Program-made: the position numbers and the translations under genes | Source of the DNA: Mizuhopecten yessoensis | Lineage: Eukaryota | Direction of reading: 5' to 3' | Assembly: GCF_002113885.1 (NCBI RefSeq) | Contig: NW_018406858.1 | Location: 561,363-625,362, forward strand | DNA length: 64,000 nt | Notes under the pieces: model-generated | Seen by the model: only the letters and a program-made list of their open reading frames with translations | Told to the model about the DNA's origin: nothing | Database searches by the model: none | Shown: one piece after another, positions 2,751 to 16,609 of the stretch | How the letters are laid out: each line of letters opens with the position of its first letter | Numbering within the stretch: the first letter of the stretch is position 1

Positions 2751-3191
2751 TTAAAATGTCACAGGAACAGAAAGTCATTTTTCACACTTGCCAAACCGTT
2801 TATTTCCTCATTCATAAAATAGAAATAACTGTACAATGTAGTAACAAACATGGTTTACATAAGTGAGGTCAGTTGGTGCCTTAATTGTCTTTAAAGAATA
2901 AACCTCCTTTAACTTTTCCTTGTAAAGGGTCATAATTATGATTTTCAGTGGAAAACAGACCCACTACATGCTTTCTGATAGAACAATACACATACCAACA
3001 TTAGACATTTTGAATGGTAAAAACATCTAGGTCACAACCTGACTTTCTTTATAGCAAGCATTGTCCAATCCTCAAACTGTCACTTTTAACATGTTATTTT
3101 ATGACATGTGACATGTCATATCTCTTCTGATGAAGGTGTCTTTAAGTGTAATGTCAGATCCTAGCTTATTCTACACACTGTTGTCCTGAGT

Positions 3192-6100
3192 CTACATCAT
3201 CTCTCCTCCTCCATCAACCATCTCAGCTTCAGCAGCACCTTTCTCCCTCATCCTTCTCTCATGTACCATACGATGCTTTTGTTTCATGAAAGCATTCACT
3301 ACATCATAGTACACAGGTAAGTGTCCATCTGTCAACAAAATACACAGGTAAGTATCCATCTGTCAACAAAATACACAGGTAAGTGTCCAACTGTCAACAA
3401 AATACACAGGTTAGTGTCCAACTGTCAACAAAATACACAGGTTAGTGTCCATCTGTCAACAAAATACACAGGTAAGTGTCCGACTGACAACAAAATACAC
3501 AGGTCCACAGGTGAGTGTCAATTTGTTTAAAGTGATAGAGAAATTATCAATTTACTTGTTCATATTAGTTGTATCTTGCATCATCCTTATCATATCTTTA
3601 TGATAGCAACAACTAATAACCAATATATAAACATTTCTTGTTATGGTATAATAACAAGAGGTCCAATGTGGTTGTGTTGCTGACTATTTACTCATCTCAC
3701 ATTTTCACCTTCAAAGTTGGTTAATTCAAATTGATTTAAATAGACTTAAAAATCATTACTCTACACATAAAGGATCTTTGTTGTGAGATTGAATTTTTCT
3801 ATACCTTCAGAATCTTTGTCGTAAGATTTCAGCTTATTTCAATAAAGGGACACTTCACAAATTAGGCATAAATATCCATTCATCAATTGGAAATCAAACT
3901 TACTTGAGACCAAATTTGGTTGAAATCAAACAATTCTTAAATCTAAAGGTAGTTATTGTAACAAGAGATCCCAGAGGAGTCTTGGCGCCCACCATTGTAC
4001 CATCTTCATTAGTTCTTTGTCAGTTTGATCTTTTCTCTTCTTTCCTCAAATCTGTTTGATCGAGTCATGTTAACAGTAAATGCACCTTGGGGTAACTTTT
4101 GATCTAAACTTAATACTGATGTGTATGAAAGCCAACATTTAAAGTGAGTTTGTCATTTCACATATTTATTAGTACAGTACTAAATGTGAAAGAAATAGAA
4201 TCGATCATTGCAATATGAGAAAGATCTGTTTAGTATTTCCTTTAGACATTTCGTTTTTATGATCAGTCTCAAAATACAACATGTACAACGAGGGATCAAG
4301 GGGAACCTACATATCAAATTTGAGAAAAATCCCTCAAGTTATTCTTGAGAAATAGTACTAACAAACCTTCAATGTCAAAAATCAAAGATGGCTGTTGGTA
4401 GGCCATTTTGTTTAACTGATCAGTTTCAAAAGTTAACATGAATAATTAAGGAGAGTGGGGAATCTGCATTGGACAACTTTTGGTCGCTCAAGCAGGATTT
4501 TAAACGCCATTGGCGAGCAGGCGACCGTCCATTTCAGACACTGCTGCACAACAAGGGAACAAGGGGAACCTACATATAAAATATGAGTAAGGTCCCTTGG
4601 GTACTTCTTGAGAAATATCAATAACAAGAATTGTTTACGGAGGGACCACGGACGCAGGGTGATTTGAATAGCCCACCATCAGATGACGGTGGGCTAAAAA
4701 ACTTGCCATTCAGAATAAGTAACCTCATAAGTACTGTAAAACCTGCATGTAAATAGTCAGCAACACACATCACATTGGCAATTGAAATTAGCTTGAGAGT
4801 TCCAAATTGTTTGGTATTTCTGTACTTTTAGTTACCTGCCCTTTTATTACAGCAAAGAGTTATATACTTTCAAGTAATACTAGTATATTGATAATGTTTT
4901 CCTTTTCCACATACACATCTCCGCTCTGCCACAAGAGCTTGACCTCTCTCATCTTGGTTATAAAGCAGGGATTTTATTTACTCTGCTACTGGTAATATTT
5001 TTATGTTAATAATTTTCTACAACATTCATGGAAATCATTTCAAAATGTTGAAATTCCCTAAACAGGTCCACAAATTCAATTTATCTTATTCCGAAACCTC
5101 AATTTGTCTTTGTTGATATAGAGGGAATAGCTTACATTTTAAGGAACTTTTCAAGGCCTGAATAAGAGAAACAATGTGGGACTTTCTACCTTATATTTTT
5201 AAAATAAATTAACAGTTTTAAACTTTATTTATTTTACAACATTTATGAAACAAAAGGCAATATTCAATCACAACAAGCTCAGAATAGGTTGGTTTCCTTA
5301 TTTGTAAGGAGATACAAATAAAGAAACCAAAATAAAGAAACCAACCTATCCTGAGCTTGTTGCGATTGAATATTGCCTTTAATTTCCCGTTCCTCAATCG
5401 CCCTGCATACCCCTGGGTATCGAACCTAGAAGTACGGCGTTGGCTCTACACCCCGATAATTAATTATGAAACAAGTTACATGTATACCATCTTATATTAC
5501 CGTATACAGAGAAATTTTGTCCAGTTAAACTTTCGCATTTCGAAAGATAAATCCATAACAAATATTTGTGTATTGTTAACTTCATCCTTAATCTTAATGT
5601 TAGAGGAAACCAGAGGACTCCAAGTAAACGTTTTTGGTTGGACAGGTGACCTGCTATCTTTTAATGTCTGATTAAGGAATCAAACCCTGGTCATATACCA
5701 CACAGTACATACTTACATTTTAGCATCCATTCATCACTTGTCTCATTGTATGTATCCTTCATTACTTTACATTTTGTATTTCTGTTGCTGTAATCAGAAA
5801 ATACGCAATGCATCCACCGTTTCCTTAGAATAAACAATATGTCATTGTCCACTTTTCTGTAAAAAACAAATGCATTGATAATCAATAACATCAGTTCTTG
5901 AAAAACTGCCTCAAGCATATATGTCAGGTTAAGTAAAAGACTGTCTTGTTGAGAAATTAACTGACAAGTGTAAACACTGCATACACTTGTCAATGTAAAT
6001 GGGAAAACAACTTACAACAAGTCATACACAGCAAATTAAAACCTTGATGGTATAACAGTACCTGTACAGTTAGTCAAGCTTGCTTTTATACAAATAGGTT

Positions 6101-9100
6101 TCAAAAAAAGAGAGAGAAAACAAGTTTTAGTGGGGGGGTTTTCATTTTAAAATTAACAAATGTTACGTAATCTTGACAAAAGGTAATGCCCAATAGTAAT
6201 GGATTGCCTGGGAGTTAACACAAATAAACAGGCATAGGGTCATTGTGGTGGATATCAAAATTACATGTATAAGCACTAAGGCTGTGTAAACATTATCAAC
6301 AGCAAACAAATGATGCAAAAATAAATAATAAATGGCTCACAATCAAATTATTTATCACACTGATTTTTTTTTTATACAAAACAGACAACGAATGAACTAT
6401 CAAACATTTTGCAACAATGCAATAAGGATTGTACTTGTAACTTAACCTTAAGGTAAAAATATTTTGTTTTAGTGAATAAATCTGTGATTTTGTATACACA
6501 CTGCAGCCCAATTTGTTCAACGTTCTTACTTGTCTCTTTTGAACTGTTGATCTGCTTCAAATCGGCACATTACATCATCTGTATAGCACTCATCAATGGT
6601 AGGTACCCTGTTGAACCTTCGGTGATAATAGGGAACAGTTTTCCTATCACCTTGAAACTTTTCTGCAGTACCTTGATAAAAAAAAAATCCATAATAAAAT
6701 TTTAAAATTATGCATTAATTGCTTCATTAAAATATTCAAATTGAATAAAACCTCTCACACACAGGGAGATTTTAGGGAGGGAATCTCTCCTGTTAGTTTC
6801 CATGTTGTTATCCTGGGACTAGATTATCCAAGATGGGGCCAAACCCCAGATTCAATTGAATTCTGTCTGATAGCATGCATATGATTTGTGTTCATAGACT
6901 CACAACCATTTGTATGTTATGACCCTAGGAGTAGTTATGACCCTTGTCCTTGGATGAGCTCCCAGGACAGATCAACCTCCAGGCCTATCCTGGGAAGTGG
7001 TGGCCTAGGGAATTTTCAATTTCAAAAGTATTTTATTGACAATACATATATAATACAAACATATAAGTTAACATTAAAGAAGATATTAGAACAGTATTGA
7101 CAAAAGAATAAGAAAACAGGCTTTGCCTATATCAGTCTTCTTATAATTCCGGTAGCTACGTACAATGCTTAAATATATAAAATGTTGTGATTCGTTTTCC
7201 TCTCACACTCATGCTCACCCACACCCACACCAGCTTATGTCTAATACTCGTTATTTAAGGGATAAAACTTGCCTGAATAACAATAATAATAACAATATAT
7301 ATGAATATTCATTTGGAATTTATCTAGCACGTATAAGTAACGAAACGTTTTGATGATTTAAGATAAGAGTCAAAATGTATAAGAATAGTTTTATTTAATT
7401 GGTCGGATGCATTACTAATACCATATACTAAACAGTGCAGATTTAAATATCCTAATAGATTATAAATAGTGGTAATATGATGCCTAATATTTGAATACAG
7501 AGGACATTGAAAGAAAAAATGTATTAGATCTTCCCTCTGTACACCACATACACAGGAAGCATCATCAATCAGATGGTCTTGTATCAGAGTTAAGATCACT
7601 TTTAAAATTTCTTAGCTGACATAAAATTGTGTTAAGTTTCCTCGGAACACAGTTAATAAAAGTTTCTGAGACGGATGTATCAAAGGTTTTTTTAAGTTTC
7701 TTTTTAAAAGATGAAATTGAGATGGAGTCTCGTACAGTGCTATCAAGTGCATTCCATTTTACCATTGTAGAAGGGAAGAAGCTATTCATATAAGTAGTAG
7801 TTCTTGTCTGTGGTATATTAAAGAATCTGTTATTTCTGAAGGTATAGTTATTATTTACATTTAGAAATGGTTGAATGATATTATCGAGATAAGTTGGAGT
7901 GTAATTATTAAGAATCTTATACATTAATGTTAGTTTATGATTTTGTCTTCGTGTGTGTAATGTTTCAAGTTGTGTTTCAGTATACAGAATGTGATGAGAT
8001 GTACCTGGCCAGTAATTAAACGCATAGCTTCTAGTTGAACTGATTCTAAAAGATCTGATTCCGATTTGGTACAATTATCCCATACTGTATCAGAATATTC
8101 TAGCACCGGTCTTATATAAGAGACATATAATGTTTTTAATGTATCCCTATCAACTGTAGTTTTTAAAATTCTAAGAATACTTAGTTTAGAGTTTGCTTTC
8201 TTATAAATATTTGAAATGTGATCTGACCATGTCCCTTAACTGTTAAATGTTAGTCCTAAGTGAGTATGGTGTTCATGTTGTGGAATTGGAGTATTGTTAA
8301 ATAGCAGTTGAGGATGACTGTTAATGTGTCTACGAGAGAAGTTAATAGCTACAGTCTTATTCGGATTGAATAGGATCTGCCATCGCTTTGACCATTCAGA
8401 GATTGAGTCAAGATCATCATTAAGTATGTTAGTAGGTGTTGTAAGGTCATTGTTATTATTTACTATTACATAGAGAGAGGTATCATCTGCAAAGAGTTTT
8501 ATATGAGAAGTTACATTATTAGTAATATCATTAATAAAAAGAAGAAAGAGGAAGGGACCAAGGACAGATCCTTGAGGAACCCCTGCAGACATAGGTTTGG
8601 TACTAGATTTATAACCTTCAAAGATAACCCTTTGTTTTCTGTCAGATAAGTAAGCTTTAAACCAATTATATAATTTACCTTTAATACCATATGTTTTTAG
8701 TTTATATAATAGGCCCAAATGCCATACTCGATCAAATGCTTTACTTATGTCACAGAAAACAAAACGCAAATCTTTACCTTGGTCTAAATTGCCACTTATA
8801 GTATTATAGATATCAGCTAGTTGATTAGTAGTGGAGTCTTTGGGTTGAAATCCTGACTGATGTACACATAACATATATTGTGACTTGAAATATAATTAAA
8901 CGTATATTTAAAAATATTTTTTGCCAACATTTTGATAAAAATAGATGTAATAGCAATAGGTCTATAGTTATTGAGATCACTGATATCTCCTTTACCTTTA
9001 TAGAGAGCAGTAACATTAGCCGTTTTTAGTACATCAGGTATTATTCCAATAGATAAAGTTCTATTAAATAATAGTTTGAATGGGTATACTAAAGAAGAAG

Positions 9101-10847
9101 AAATGTTCTTTACAATCATAGGTAAAATACCATCAGGACCCACTGGTTTGTTTTTATTAAAAATGTCAAATTGGTCAGTTATATCTTGTTCAGTTATGTT
9201 AATGTCAGAAAGTTCAAATGGACATAAGGGAGGTAAATCAGGTAGGTTAGTGTCAGTAGTATCAGTAAAGAAGTTATTTAGTGCCTCAGCTTTATCTTGT
9301 GGATGGATTAATATTTTATTGTTAGATTTTAGAGGATAGGAATTAGTGCTAGTGTTATTCATTTTTCCTATAGATTTTGCTATCTGCCACCATTTTCTTG
9401 GATGCACTGTTTTGTCGGCAAGACAATTTTGAAGTTTCTTAAAGTAATTTTCTTTGGATTGCCGAATAATTTGTATAGTGTAATTGCGACAAGTTCTAAA
9501 TTTTGCCCAATCTTGTTCCCTATTTTTATTTTTAGCTATTTTATGTAATCTATTCTTATATCTTAATTTATGCCGAATTTCACCAGTCATCCAAGGTTTA
9601 TCATCAGGATGGACAGTAATTGTTTTATGAGGGATATGGGAGTAAGTAGCAGAGTTTATTTTGTTTATAACAGTAGAATATAGTTCATAGTTCATTAATG
9701 CTAGTAGTGTTATTAACTATGGAATCCCAATCATTACTAAGTAGTTCATTATTAATAGCATCCCAATTAGCTTCATTGAACTTATATATAGGTTTCTTGA
9801 ATGGTTTATTTTTTAGTGTCTTAAAACAAATGTTAGCAAGGATGGGGCAGTGATCACTACAGAGAGGGGAAAGTACATTTGTCGAGGTAAAAATGTTAAC
9901 ATCATTACTAATAAATACATCAATTAAGGTAGCAGTAGTGTTTGTAATGCGTGTTGGTGATTGTATTAAGTTTTTTAAGTGATATTTAGTAATTAATCTT
10001 GCTATATGTGAATTAGGTTTCATTGTGATAAAGTCAATATTTATGTCACCAGTGATAATGATATTAAGATTAGTATTAGAAAGATTATCCAAAATGTTAT
10101 CAAGTTCATTCCAGTAATCTATTTTTGTATTAGGAGGGCTATAAAGACAGCAGAGAAGCATTTTTTTGTTAGAAGTGTTAATTTCTAGGATGACAAGTTC
10201 TATGACTTCAGTTTCAAGATCAGTTCTGTGATTTATTAAGAGGTTGTTTTCAGTATATATCATAATACCACCACCGTGTTGCCTAGGGAATACCACAGGT
10301 GCTGGACACACTGGTCAATGGTCTTATGGTTACTTACTGTTTAAAATGCATGCAAAATTTATCTTACATCTTAATAATTGTGATGAGGAATTAATATATA
10401 CAATGTACCTTATTTCAAATGAGCATTCCAAATTTTTTCATTCCGTATTTTTAAATATTGATCGACCATTAGTAACGTTACCAAATGGCACATTTGTGCG
10501 GTGCACAATGACCTAACATACTCATGCATATGATGTATGTTTATGTATAAACAGACGACTGATCAGATTTTTGAAGCCTTCAATTATAGTCAGTTTTAAC
10601 GGACTAGAATGATTACTGTAGTCTGCTAAAACTGGCCATAATCGCAGGCTCAAAAGTTCTGATCGATCATGACATAGGCCTACCCCTATGTCATTTGATA
10701 CCTTAACTATTAGTTAAGTTTTTGTGAGCTTCATCAATTTATGTTACCCTTTATCAAAGTGGCAGGAGCATCAAAAAGTAGAGATAAAAAAGTCCTTGTA
10801 AACTGTGTGTATCTCGAAAGGGTTGAATCGTCGTCCTTTCCCGACAT
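3192..10847 (-). CDS. NDUFB10: NADH dehydrogenase (ubiquinone) 1 beta subcomplex subunit 10 (PDSW), 4 coding exons, 172 aa
   Basis: Exons 10847-10748, 6671-6530, 5856-5717 and 3328-3192, all GT-AG with compatible phases, 519 nt in total. Protein MSGKDDDSTLSRYTQFTRTFLSLLFDAPATLIKGTAEKFQGDRKTVPYYHRRFNRVPTIDECYTDDVMCRFEADQQFKRDKKVDNDILFILRKRWMHC...YGHLPVYYDVVNAFMKQKHRMVHERR. The YYHRRF.RVP.I.EC...D..C.FEA..QFKRD..VD motif is the PDSW signature. Confidence 0.93.
3311..3503. repeat. 31-bp minisatellite, 6 copies, spanning the NDUFB10 intron 3/exon 4 junction
   Basis: Unit ACACAGGTAAGTGTCCATCTGTCAACAAAAT starting at 3311, 3342, 3373, 3404, 3435 and 3466. Confidence 0.95.
3960..4700 (+). mobile_element. 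Probable non-autonomous Helitron/Helentron-type (HINE-like) element in NDUFB10 intron 3
   Basis: Starts AACAAGAG and ends in the hairpin TAGCCCACCATC-AGAT-GACGGTGGGCTA followed by an A-run. Internal duplicated CAAGGGGAACCTACATAT blocks. Architecture typical of bivalve HINE-like repeats; family assignment is inference. Confidence 0.5.
5253..5380. mobile_element. Foldback/MITE-like element, ~51-bp inverted arms with 3 mismatches
   Basis: AAAGGCAATATTCAATCACAACAAGCTCAGAATAGGTTGGTTTCCTTATTT (5253-5303) versus its near reverse complement at 5330-5380. Confidence 0.7.
7014..10280 (-). mobile_element. 5'-truncated, frameshifted non-LTR retrotransposon (CR1/L2 group) ORF2: APE endonuclease plus reverse transcriptase, in NDUFB10 intron 1
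   Basis: EN motifs GGGIMIY, LYSPPN, GDINID, SDHCPI (9685-10311). RT motifs NYRPI, QSGF, DISKAFDRVWH, GVPQGSVLGP, LFADDT (8236-9695). C-terminal C-CG...HFFFQCP. AATAAA plus TTTGAAATTGAAA tail near 7015-7037. Flanking 11-bp direct repeat GCCTAGGGAAT at 7003-7013 and 10281-10291. Confidence 0.93.
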
Positions 10848-11270: not shown

Positions 11271-14200
11271 ATGGTAAGACGTGAACTATTGATGTGAATT
11301 CAATCTAGCGTCATCTGTCATTAAATCGAACAAATTGGAAATTGCACGATGAATTGTAATGACTTATATAGTTACTGTGTAATGTACCGAAAGATTTTTC
11401 TTCTTAGATGGAAAATATAGCAGTATTGTGGTTATATATATATTGCACATCATGATCTTTTGACACGCACTTATACACGTGTTAGACAAGCGGGTTTTGA
11501 TGATGAAAAACCCCCAAAAGGGCCTTTAATACATACGAAACGAACATTCAAAAAAAATCTGAATTAGAACTTCAGAAAAAAAGCTGACTCTTGGGAATAT
11601 GTTTTCTGATAACTTTATTTTCGACTGCAGCTTCAGTGTACATGTTGATTCGCCCTAAATCCCGAGCCCCCTGGGTTGGTTAAGGTCGAATTTGAACATG
11701 TTTAGTAGGGAAAATCCTGGAATTTGAGAGAGCAGTGGACCATTTCCAGCAGTTTTTTAGGCGACATCAAAATGATGATAAAACTGGTCAATTTCAGTTA
11801 TGAAGGGTCAATGGCCCCCTCCAGGTTTAGTAGTGAAGGCTTTTACAATCGCATCTCGCGTCCTGGTCTTGTTAACTGATGCATTCTCACTTACGGTAAC
11901 TAGCCACTGGCATGGCGACCCATAGGTACTAGCCTCAACGTTTATCCATACTAGTGCCGTCAGAACTGGAGAAAGGGGGGGGGGGATCTCTGAACTAGAT
12001 TTCTTGGTGACTCGTAGCCATTGGGCTTGATGGTCATCCTTGACTATTGGTGAATTGCGCATAAGTTGCGAGTTGTACATTCAAACAGACAATTCACATG
12101 TTCCTAGAATATGCAATATGATGTAGATTAAGTCTCGCAAACTCTTTTTGATGTGCAGGATTTTAATTGAAGAAATGAGGGGAAAAAATGCAGCTGTTAA
12201 AATTACCAATAGAAAACTTAAATTGTCCCTTTTTGTTTTTTCAGTCACACAGGAAATTCTCAGCACCCCGTCATGGGTCGAAGGGCTTTCTACCAAAGAA
12301 GAGGGCCAGCCGTCATAGGGGCAAAGTCAAGGCTTTCCCTACAGATGATAAGAACAAGCCTGTCCATTTGACAGCTTTTATCGGTTACAAGGCTGGCATG
12401 TCCCACATTGTTCGTGATGTAGACCGACCTGGTTCGAGTAAGTACCATGTAGACACGAGGTCTCCTTAATGTAATTAGCATAACCTGGATGTCGTCTGGC
12501 CGTAGCTGCGATAACGTAGCTTTCTGACGACCGCCATGACAGATCATCCGTGACGTTATCTCAATTAGCCTTTCTATATATGGCCTGCATGGCCAAATAA
12601 AGTATTACTACTGATGTTTACTACAATTTCCACATTAGGTCATGACACCTATATGTGGACATCGGACCTATATCGGAAGAGAGACAACCTTTCCAACACT
12701 GCGGTCAATTCAGATTTCGATTACGCTTGCTACATTTACTTGATTATTTAACGACATTTTAGGCAGAGTTAAACTTCAAGTTGTGCAGGATATCAACAGA
12801 AATAGTTCATACGAAAACCTTATTTATGGATGCAGACCAATGTGCTGTCAATTAATGCTAAAATCGCCCCGGTGTGATTCACACCGGGCTTGCTCCATTA
12901 CAAGGCATGGGATCGATTTAATACCCGGCCGGGGCAGAGGAGGCCGGGTATTAATATTAGTTCTATCTGGCCGCAGCACCAGACACTTCGACAGACAGGT
13001 GTTTGGTCTGGAATCCGAGTGCACTACTCCATCAAAATGAAATACTTCTCCATCATTTTATGTACAGATTTAACGGAATGCAATTTTTAACTAAATTGGC
13101 AGTTTTAACAAGACCAAAACAAAAAATCTTGGGTTTCCGCTAACCCTACCTATCCTAAATTTTTATTTTTATTTTAGATATGCACTGTTAAAGTCCAAAC
13201 TTCCGCCCTAAAAAGACGACTGAAACAGGAGTAAAATAAATTTGGTCCGAATAATTGTCTATTAGTACATGCAAGGTACAATATGTTTGTTAATAGTACC
13301 CTGAAGCCTTGCAACATTAAATGCTCCAATACAGTAGTGCACTCTATTCCCAAACCAGATATCATTGATCAAAATGACGAAGCCTATCAATTGGCCCAGG
13401 GTTTTTCCAAGAAAATTTAACCATCATGTTCAAGTATGCTGTATGTTTTGAATTGGGCAATACAATTGTTCGAAAAATAATGCATACAATATCGATAATT
13501 AGAAGATGCTGTCTGAAAGATCTTTTATGCATCATTGTCTTTCAAAATAACTATTTCAGTTTTGAGTGCCAATGTTCATTAATCTTGCATTTGATAACGA
13601 TTCAACGGGTGAAAGTTCTGTAAAACTTGTGCAAAGTGGCCAAAATTGTTATTTTGTTTTACCGAAACGGAAATGAAATTATTCCAATAGTAGTAATGAT
13701 TAATATGATAACTGAACAGGTTGTCAAGTCCACCTTTTGTATTTTAGAATCCAACAAGAAAGAAATCGTGGAGGCAGTCACCATCATTGAGACACCACCC
13801 ATGGTTATTGTGGGTTTGGTAGGCTACATTGAAACACCAAGTGGTCTGAGGTCATTCAAGACTTTGTTTGCTGAGCATCTGAATGAGGATTGCAGGAGGC
13901 GATTTTACAAAAACTGGTATGATTTCAAATGTTGTAAAAGTGCATTATATTAAGACAATATTTAGATTTATGAAATACAGGCTACTACATTTGCATGTAA
14001 ACCGTGTATTGCAAAAACAATTTGGAAGAAATTTATAATCTGAAACTGAAATTTGTGATCCAAAATATGACTAGCTTTCCTTTATTGACTATTTTATGTT
14101 GCATGATTTTGTAATAAGAAATGTTGAATTGTGCTATACCTGAACTAATGATGATGTCATTCCAGCTCCTACCATGGTTATATGGTGAGCTGTGGTACTC

Positions 14201-16609
14201 CTCTTGGTCAGTGTCCTGCTGTTGCCTAATTCTGTACTTGCTAAACTTTCACGGTTTTTGACAGCAGTACTGAGTTGGCTTGCTTGGTTCACGGCTAACG
14301 AGTCCATGTTTAATGTTGTGGTTTTCCTCCACTGGTCGGCATCCGACTACGAGGCTAACCACATGCTTCTTAATCAAAAAGGTACAACTGCAAGAAGAAG
14401 GCATTTACCAAGTACGCCAAAAAATGGACTGATGAGAGTGGAAAGAAGGAGATTGAGCGTGACTTCCAGAAAATGAAGAAGTACTGCAAGGTCATCCGTG
14501 TCATTGCCCACACACAGGTAAATAATTTAGACATCTATAGGATTCGGTTTAATATTTTCTAAGTCTTTTTACAAATCCCAAGGAACATTAAAAGTCAAAT
14601 TTATTTAAGTGCTCTAGGGAGTCCTTACTACAAATAAAGGATTGTTCAAGGTAGCTCTCTATTTGTAAAATTGTTGATTTATTTTAATATGCTAGTTCTT
14701 GCATTACTGACGAGCTCAAAGCTCGCACCTTTTTGGAAAAACAAAATATTGCAATGTAAGCAAGACTAATATTGAAAGGATTCTTTTGAAACGTGGGAAA
14801 CTATTTTGTTGACGTACATTATGCAAACTATACTTTTTTGTAGACTAAGTTGATGAAGAAGCGTCAGAAGAAGGCACACATCATGGAGATCCAGGTGAAT
14901 GGAGGCACCATTGCACAGAAGGTGGACTGGGCTAGGGAGAAGATGGAATCATCTGTCCCTGTTGGCTCCGTCTTTGCCATGGATGAAAACATTGATATCA
15001 TTGGTGTAACCAAGGGTAAAGGAGTCAAAGGTGAGATGAATACTGATTTTATTAAATTTCATGGCCTTTGAAAGAAAATGTGAATTTTGTTGGGCCAGAA
15101 TTCCTTGACTAACTTTCTCTCGAGTGATCAAACTGCATTGATGCATGATGAAACACATGGTAATGCTCCTGCCAGAGCATGCTGACTTTCAGTGGTGACA
15201 CAATCCATGCTGCCTTCCTTCTGACAACAATGCTTGAGAATGTCTTGAAAAATCCATTTTTCATTGCCCTACCTACCTTTAAAAAATTGGTGCCATGTTT
15301 AAATGCAAATTTTAATCCATTCTTGTTTACATTACTGTTATTAAACAAAGAGCTAAAGCAAGCACACATTTTGCTTAATAACATAACTTGCCTAGCCGAG
15401 ATGTTTTTTTCACAACTATTGCTTAAAAAAGTAATTCCATTTTGGCCTGATCAGGGATAAAAAAAAAATCTGATTTATTTACTACCAAATTAAAAGTATT
15501 TTTAACTACAAAAGTTTTCCTTTATTTACCTGACAGGTGTGACATCCAGATGGCACACAAAGAAGTTGCCCAGGAAGACGCACAAGGGTCTAAGAAAAGT
15601 TGCCTGTATTGGAGCCTGGCATCCAAGTCGTGTTCAGTTCACTGTTGCTAGGGCTGGACAGAAGGGTTACCATCACCGTACAGAGATCAACAAAAAGATC
15701 TACCGTATGGGTGAAGGTACACACACTAAGGACGGAAAGCTGGTGAAAAATAATGCTTCCACAGACTTTGATCCCTCAGAGAAGAACATCACCCCCATGG
15801 GAGGATTCCCCCATTACGGAGAGGTCAACAATGACTTCGTCATGATCAAGGGCTGCACCATGGGACCTAAAAAGAGGATTCTGACCCTCCGCAAGGTTAG
15901 TCTTCTATAAGAACAGCAAGGTGAACTTTGCAAAGGATGATGTTTTTTGTATCGAGAAATTGGCTCAAGTTTCAAGAAATGAAATGTTTTTGTTATAGAA
16001 TTCAAAAACCTTTATCTTTTTCCTGTGGTAGTACTGCGACTTTCAGTTAGATACCTGTATGTTTTACTCGAGAAAGCATGAACACCAAAGGCCATGATTT
16101 AATCTCTTTCTTTTTTTTTTACATATTTTAAGTGGCTTAGTTTTCATTTCAGATATGCTGTTGCTATAGTAGTAGGGCATTGGTGAAAAAGTGTTTTTGT
16201 TTCCAACTTTCTTTGCTATTTTCACCATAACAATGTTAAATTTTGTAGTCACTGCTGCCATCTTTCAAGAAGAAGCAGATGGAGAAGATCAACCTGAAGT
16301 TTATTGACACTGCCAGTAAATTTGGTCACGGTCGCTTCCAGACATTCGAGGAGAAGAGTAACTTTATGGTAAGTTGAGGTGTCTAAAAAAAAAATGTCGG
16401 AGATGACAAACAGATATTATTTAAAATATTTCTTTTTTAAAAAGAGCTCTCGACAATATTATTGCAATGTCGGCTTACTTGTTTTGTGAAAAATGTCTTC
16501 ATCTGCATTATTAATGGAATATTTTGACCTTGAATGAAATAACTAATAGTTCTTATTTGTCTGTTTTCAGGGACCTCTCAAGAAGGACCGCAAGGAAACT
16601 CCTGCATAA
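11271..16609 (+). CDS. RPL3: 60S ribosomal protein L3 (uL3), 8 coding exons, 401 aa
   Basis: Exons 11271-11273 (ATG), 12245-12437, 13748-13916, 14382-14517, 14844-15030, 15537-15895, 16249-16368 and 16571-16609; all GT-AG, 1206 nt. Protein [21 protein letters not shown]...[27 protein letters not shown]...[13 protein letters not shown]...[18 protein letters not shown] at 16633-16638. Confidence 0.97.
14143..14276 (+). ncRNA. Candidate box C/D snoRNA-like structured element in RPL3 intron 3, overlapping an alternative 3' splice site
   Basis: Box C ATGATGA at 14148-14154, box D CTGA at 14270-14273, short terminal stem AAC/GTT, hairpin at 14163-14192 and a 15-pair stem 14208-14224/14259-14273. 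I recognised no rRNA guide. Confidence 0.45.
15135..15233 (+). ncRNA. SNORD83: Box C/D snoRNA of the SNORD83 (U83) family in RPL3 intron 5
   Basis: Box C ATGATGA at 15145-15151. Guide GCTGCCTTCCTT immediately before box D CTGA (15221-15224) is complementary to the conserved 18S rRNA sequence AAGGAAGGCAGC. Terminal stem GCATTGATG/CAACAATGC. The TGCCTTCCTTCTGA end matches vertebrate U83 as I recall it. Confidence 0.85.

Follow-up and report, generated by a model that had tools for sequence, protein, structure and literature searches.

We analyzed a 64,000-nucleotide (nt) window of the genome of the scallop Mizuhopecten yessoensis (assembly GCF_002113885.1, contig NW_018406858.1, positions 561,363 to 625,362 of the forward strand; coordinates below count from the first letter of this window). 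The window contains the gene for ribosomal protein uL3 (RPL3), each exon of which matched Pfam PF00297 in an exon-by-exon search. Our subject is the 3' half of RPL3 intron 3, a structured region (folding z = -3.8) that carries a series of hairpins and is single-copy in the scallop genome (988 Mb in 82,659 contigs). An Rfam search of this element, up to E 10, matched no family save for a weak archaeal C-box match. The element is real and deeply conserved among RPL3 genes. Features of the locus are collected in Table 1.

Table 1. Features of RPL3 and its intron 3 in the scallop window.
Feature	Position	Strand	Details
RPL3 exon 1	ends with ATG 11272-74	+	sequence
RPL3 exon after exon 1	12245-12437	+	sequence
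RPL3 exon 3	13748-13916	+	PF00297; donor GT 13917-18
C/D box look-alike	14143-14276	+	C box 14148-54, D box 14270-73, 3-bp terminal stem; this locus only, without guide or Rfam match
Second candidate poison acceptor	14145-14165	+	CTAAT 14145-49, AG 14164-65, stop TAA 14227-29
Hairpin A, degenerate motif copy	14163-14192	+	loop CUA 14169-71, bulge U14186, C-G inner pair; pair probability ~1.0
Hairpin B, consensus motif	14197-14303	+	loop CUC 14201-03, bulge C14299; strict descriptor match
Candidate poison acceptor of the initial annotation	14241-14267	+	branch-like CTAAAC 14241-46; AG 14263-64 and 14266-67; paired in every predicted fold
Premature stop TAA	14296-14298	+	reached in frame from AG 14263-64 or 14266-67
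Hairpin C, consensus motif	14318-14362	+	loop CAC 14330-32, bulge C14350; strict descriptor match
Productive acceptor, weak	14363-14381	+	ends AAG; score -6.7
RPL3 exon 4	14382-14517	+	PF00297; begins after AAG
RPL3 exons after exon 4	14844-15030, 15537-15895, 16249-16368, 16571 onward	+	sequence

The same intron was recovered from about 30 non-redundant genomic loci (L numbers below) through exon searches, contig look-ups and a metagenome scan. A possibly mammalian sequence (P0040) was left out of the intron set, and the introns compared are bilaterian, with no nematode or non-bilaterian among them. Their 3' ends have little linear sequence in common; what recurs is a single motif, a hairpin of the form 5'-YUC[C-N-C]U ... 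A[N]GAR-3'. It forms arrays of two to four hairpins per locus, each with a 3x1 internal loop of C-loop geometry, and we found such arrays in mollusc-, rotifer-, arthropod-, echinoderm-, fish- and bird-like RPL3 loci. A strict descriptor of the motif yielded 41 matches within the final 300 nt of intron 3, distributed over 22 of the 30 loci (0.79 expected from shuffles), and 11 matches in the remaining 121.8 kb.

Because the descriptor was derived from the same data, its innermost three pairs on each side are circular as evidence, whereas the pairs farther out are independent. The pairs outside the descriptor covary through all pair types (outer pairs 4-5, inner pairs 4-6; p <= 0.002), with 94% of cells paired and 83 two-sided changes, compared with 31-50% in slid controls. 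A covariance model trained on 23 hairpins returned 49 matches in 278 kb; 48 of these lie on the sense strand within 344 nt of an intron 3 acceptor, and among the loci matched are 12 that played no part in training. Nearly any intron contains upstream AGs that are followed by stops, but chance features of a GC-richer intron stretch can hardly account for the hairpins, whose chance origin is refuted by the excess of matches, the covariation, the positional restriction and the single genome copy. Four annelid-like loci carry a variant of the motif with C-G outer pairs, and the motif is absent from the mite-like L076 and from L050, which groups with vertebrates and has an intron of 91 nt. L050 (positions 2900-3000) is a vertebrate-like RPL3 relative that may be the RPL3L paralogue.

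Three loci can be placed by cluster names – L016 with Brachionus rotifers, L038 with the brittle star Amphiura and, loosely, L034 with the mite Leptotrombidium – and the remaining taxon labels we infer. A quick tree of joined exon peptides from the other loci places L002, L099, L004, L008, L098, L102 and L103 together with 97% support in the Shimodaira-Hasegawa-like approximate likelihood-ratio test (SH-aLRT), and L053, L060, L079, L083 and L075 beside arthropod-like sequences. A fused 119-codon exon (window 15537-15895) that corresponds to several exons in the fish- and bird-like loci is common to the scallop, L004 and L102, and L004 and L102 are therefore called bivalve-like; the exon is also a possible marker of intron loss. 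By protein signature and Rfam content we take L097 to be fish-like and L062 to be bird-like, the latter from its exon 4 residues and an intron 3 of 857 nt, compared with ~620 in the table of PMC10324135.

In the scallop, the array comprises three hairpins. Degenerate first copies resembling hairpin A also occur in L002, L045, L067 and L098. Hairpins B and C provide the only well-paired sense matches to the descriptor in the window (14201/14299 and 14330/14350). Hairpin B is extended by a long scallop-specific apical arm. Hairpin C, with pair probabilities of 0.95-1.0, lies over the branch-point zone: its basal stem pairs the predicted branch adenosine, A14358, whose unpaired probability is 0.00 in every window folded.

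The array adjoins a poor productive splice site. An initial annotation of this DNA, made from the letters of the window, had called the exon 4 acceptor atypical, and our scoring agrees: the branch-like CTAAC at 14355-59 precedes a site ending in AAG that scores -6.7, where 68 other RPL3 acceptors have a mean of 3.6 (leave-one-out). This weakness is general, with intron 3 acceptors averaging -0.5 across 28 loci against 3.6 for other RPL3 acceptors (p = 6e-9, with a small scoring matrix and related taxa). An AAG end is found in 12 of 28 intron 3 acceptors and 2 of 68 others. The last hairpin of the array ends a median of 32 nt before the acceptor AG, and its closing A, which is invariant, falls at -24 to -57 from the acceptor. 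In 12 of 17 loci this closing A of the last hairpin is part of a branch-like TRAY, compared with 6 of 27 upstream copies (p = 0.004).

Upstream of the array's last hairpin lie candidate acceptors that would produce unproductive messages. The initial annotation had also proposed a better-looking acceptor within the intron, and AG 14263-64 is indeed the highest-scoring AG of intron 3 (3.5). Both this AG and 14266-67 lead in frame to the premature TAA, which is followed by four exon junctions (exons 4|5|6|7|8; exon ends 14517, 15030, 15895 and 16368), as had been claimed. A second candidate, AG 14164-65, matches in position the best upstream AG of the closest relatives and has a weak score of its own (0.1); AG 14263-64 outscores it but sits in the long hairpin B arm that the relatives lack. 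Judging from these letters, either may be the AG used in the scallop. In four loci (L004, L008, L103 and L062) the upstream AG with the highest score is found 5' of the first hairpin, and its use would bring in a stop or a frameshift; in L098 an upstream AG that scores a close second is found there. Going by these predicted AGs, the element would lie between the productive and the unproductive sites in these five loci, and the best scallop AG is inside hairpin B. We think it probable that the array controls the choice between productive splicing and splicing to messages degraded by nonsense-mediated decay (NMD).

Human RPL3 offers a precedent in the same intron, the one in which, as the initial annotation had noted, mammalian RPL3 makes its NMD isoform. 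A cryptic acceptor in human intron 3 yields an NMD isoform that rises from 1.4% of transcripts to 42% without NMD (PMC12811116), and the isoform is promoted by RPL3 or RPL3L (PMC12811116, PMC3177206). Crosslinking and immunoprecipitation (CLIP) places RPL3L on human intron 3, at a position reported to be upstream of the alternative acceptor (PMC12811116). At the end of this intron lies SNORD139, annotated as a small nucleolar RNA (snoRNA), in which the predicted branch point falls; crosslinking data show it paired with the intron upstream, and no mature form of it was detected (PMC10324135). The initial annotation overlooked both this precedent (PMC10324135) and the conserved C-loop-type hairpins.

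The bird-like L062 connects the two. It matches the Rfam family snoU82P (RF01151, 44.2 bits) from the 3' arm of its last hairpin to the acceptor AG. The snoU82P model contains no base pairs; its 'C box', UGAUGA, is the 3' strand of our motif, and its 'D box' overlaps the acceptor. In a comparison of coordinates only, the SNORD139 duplex as tabulated (PMC10324135) joins approximately -22 to -51 with -62 to -89 from the acceptor, near the arms of the last L062 hairpin, which span -75 to -35. Rfam scans of the scallop gave no RF01151 match, and hairpin C with its acceptor is the positional equivalent of snoU82P/SNORD139, at the 3' end of RPL3 intron 3 and over the branch zone. From their positions, snoU82P and SNORD139 appear to be the same locus. 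Most likely, what has been annotated in vertebrates as the 'snoRNA' SNORD139/snoU82P is no guide RNA and consists of the acceptor together with the last hairpin's 3' arm.

The scallop intron invites a different snoRNA-based reading, which is the one the initial annotation advanced: a box C/D kink-turn (K-turn), bound as a small nucleolar ribonucleoprotein (snoRNP), would alternate with a stem that masks the upstream acceptor, and the two folds would gate poison splicing as SNORD86 does in NOP56. The boxes it described are present. ATGATGA and CTGA stand at canonical K-turn spacing with a 3-bp AAC/GTT stem (14143-45/14274-76), a geometry with P = 0.006 (strict) or 0.016 (loose) against shuffles and the sole strict C/D K-turn case on the window's + strand. 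RPL3 introns do host C/D snoRNAs (U83, at 15137-15231), and the K-turn state would break hairpin B, making an indirect effect possible. The 15-pair masking stem can be drawn with its three G-U pairs and 2-nt bulge, but it is usually not the favoured fold: across five folding windows its outer pairs have probabilities of 0.00-0.24 and its inner pairs 0.00-0.58, and in 14190-14310 a competing hairpin is better by 8 kcal/mol.

Mutual exclusion of the two folds is not supported as a gate. Because AG 14263-64 stays paired in the C/D state as well and the cost of opening the acceptor is similar (7.9 kcal/mol with that state forced, 7.2 when free), the folds do not gate the acceptor in the folding model. 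A snoRNP-compatible fold with changed access to the splice site, of the SNORD86/NOP56 type, is not what the folding predicts. The ensemble of the K-turn state (boxes open, terminal stem closed) is 15 kcal/mol worse in this model, which ignores protein binding energy. Nor is a C/D box pair with a 3-bp stem in that spacing present in the 27 other orthologous introns, five bivalve-like ones among them; the conservation that the initial annotation proposed to look for is found in the hairpins, which are conserved and covary, and the C/D geometry occurs in 1 of 28 introns. Furthermore, uL3 is not known to be a snoRNP protein, which leaves such a switch without the feedback logic that NOP56 has. We consider the snoRNP switch very unlikely; what survives of the regulatory reading is a structured element beside a weak acceptor and an upstream poison acceptor.

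The boxes might instead belong to a lineage-restricted orphan C/D snoRNA of ~134 nt, covering hairpins A and B and processed independently, which could coexist with a splicing role for the array. The box geometry would fit such an RNA, as would the separate C/D box pair upstream of the intron 3 hairpins in the arthropod-like L079 (885-990), which has no Rfam match. On the other side, no Watson-Crick guide beside the D box exceeds 7 nt when matched to 18S, partial 28S, U1, U2, U4, U5 and U6, compared with 13 nt for a true U83 control. A box C/D snoRNA would be expected to have, immediately 5' of D or D', a guide of at least 10 nt to rRNA or snRNA, and either conserved boxes or a known family; the scallop sequence has neither, there is no Rfam match, and no space is left for C'/D' boxes after the sole 10-nt match. 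We rate this snoRNA as unlikely. Exon searches turned up no pectinid relatives, and since the nearest loci are only ~80-86% identical at the protein level, the absence of the boxes from them may be compatible with a snoRNA restricted to pectinids. The C/D boxes themselves may have arisen by chance. Two 10-nt matches to 28S inside the element were rejected, being near chance level and not beside a proper box, and so was an H/ACA reading (ACA 14361-63), which lacks an H box and an Rfam match and whose hairpins are accounted for by the motif.

Several further noncoding RNAs and repeats were observed along the way. RPL3 intron 5 of the scallop contains a U83-family C/D snoRNA (window 15137-15231, + strand; Rfam snoU83B, 42.5 bits) whose 13-nt guide pairs perfectly with 18S. 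Because U83-family members are also present in RPL3 introns of L002, L004, L062 and L097, the pairing of U83 with RPL3 as host is old. Intron 1 holds two further C/D box pairs (window 11500-11562 and 11772-11879, + strand), with no Rfam match and no clear guide in an incomplete rRNA set. The insect-like RPL3 of L060 has three tandem SNORA73-like (U17) matches, below the gathering score, in the intron after exon 4 (3175-3779). About 1 kb upstream of the RPL3 start, on the minus strand, window 8236-10311 is the remnant of a retrotransposon of the long interspersed nuclear element (LINE) type, with endonuclease (PF14529) and reverse transcriptase (PF00078) spread over three frames. Around the sarcin-ricin loop, the 28S on contig C76260 of the scallop assembly (L093, L094) departs from its counterparts on C890 and C4985; it resembles flowering-plant rRNA, and the contig is likely a contaminant.

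Our best explanation for the array, held with slightly better than even confidence, is a joint one: 14163-14381 is the scallop copy of a bilaterian-wide hairpin array at the 3' end of RPL3 intron 3, and this array is a cis-element of RPL3 autoregulation through splicing and NMD, read most simply by free uL3. A feedback protein – uL3 alone or with partners – would bind and stabilize the hairpins and thereby hide the branch point of the weak productive acceptor. The spliceosome would then take an upstream AG (in the scallop 14263-64/14266-67 or 14164-65) or retain the intron, and the resulting premature stop would expose the message to NMD. With uL3 drawn off into pre-ribosomes, the hairpins would open and productive splicing would win. 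In our estimate it is about as likely as not that the loops are read by uL3 itself and the branch point hidden in this way.

Several observations weigh against this explanation. The scallop hairpin B is window-dependent, with a probability of 0.97-0.99 in three folding windows and 0.10-0.18 in two. The human circuit has been ascribed to G runs, hnRNP H1, NPM and KHSRP (PMC3177206), and the SNORD139 duplex is predicted to raise access to the branch point, which is the opposite sign (PMC10324135). RPL3L CLIP signal is reported upstream of the human alternative acceptor (PMC12811116), whereas in most loci the hairpins are found downstream of the upstream AG that scores best. The covariance model detected the motif in neither 18S nor partial 28S, so rRNA mimicry is not claimed. 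Finally, the loci are related by descent and most of their taxon labels are inferred.

Some of these points would suit an array that governs the same splicing choice under another reader – a splicing factor, helicase, uL3 chaperone or other ribosomal protein – or one that acts ligand-free, presenting the branch adenosine and favouring productive splicing. The branch-like TRAY at the closing A beside the bulge, the improved branch-point access predicted for the duplex (PMC10324135), the position of RPL3L CLIP and the lack of an rRNA copy of the motif all point that way. However, two to four copies with the same loop, most of them far from the branch zone, fit repeated ligand sites better; the motif is confined to intron 3 in the loci compared; and in mammals the documented output is feedback from the protein that the gene itself encodes. 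We regard such a reader, or branch presentation, as possible but doubtful. The fullest version of autoregulation by uL3 – an ancient, undescribed C-loop array in bilaterian RPL3 to which free uL3 (and, in muscle, RPL3L) would bind directly, thereby hiding the branch point of productive splicing, with SNORD139/snoU82P as a mis-annotated arm – is plausible at somewhat less than even odds.

Known systems resemble the array in part. The human alternative 3' splice site and SNORD139 share its intron position, a structured 3' end with the branch point and an upstream acceptor that leads to a premature stop, but what the papers concerned report for mammals is G runs or a duplex between snoRNA and intron, with no repeated C-loop motif and nothing in invertebrates (PMC3177206, PMC12811116, PMC10324135). 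L10ARE in RPL10A/rpl-1 is likewise a metazoan-wide element in an orthologous, unproductively spliced ribosomal protein intron (PMC4937301), and conservation across animals in an orthologous intron is what we find for RPL3; no conserved stretch of that kind had been found for the RPL3 intron (PMC4937301). L10ARE is a single 39-nt stretch with proven protein binding, whereas the RPL3 array is a multi-copy structural motif at the 3' splice site, known here from sequence. SNORD86 in NOP56, as summarized in PMC10324135, is similar as an intronic structure over splice signals that gives an NMD isoform; in NOP56 the snoRNA is a binding target of its own host protein and splice-site use shifts with the fold, whereas the predicted folding of RPL3 leaves the acceptor closed and its boxes are unconserved.

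The loop itself recalls the C-loop of rRNA (C-50, G[CAC]U/A[G]C; PMC2441787), with a 3x1 loop, a C-N-C long strand, a U-A inner pair and one bulged base. Consistent with this class, the RPL3 motif places C-N-C opposite one base between U-A and Watson-Crick closing pairs, with compensatory change in the flanking helices. It departs from the rRNA example in its fixed UC/GA outer pairs and its tandem pre-mRNA copies, and the likeness is one of loop geometry read from sequence, the non-canonical pairs being putative.

The kind of system described here is known, and its human site has been noticed under another name; for the repeated C-loop-type motif and its reach into invertebrates, a search of mostly open-access journals returned no description. 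About twenty years after RPL3 feedback by way of splicing and NMD became known, no element common to animals had been found (PMC4937301), and the motif supplies exact nucleotides: the two loop Cs, the closing U-A and the bulge. It would be a rare case of tandem C-loops in pre-mRNA, and it suggests that a 'snoRNA' of Rfam and HGNC is a splicing element. The motif also bears on the repression of RPL3 by RPL3L in heart muscle, which is relevant to RPL3L cardiomyopathy (PMC12811116); if L050, which lacks the motif, is the RPL3L paralogue, this would fit a one-way repression, from RPL3L to RPL3.

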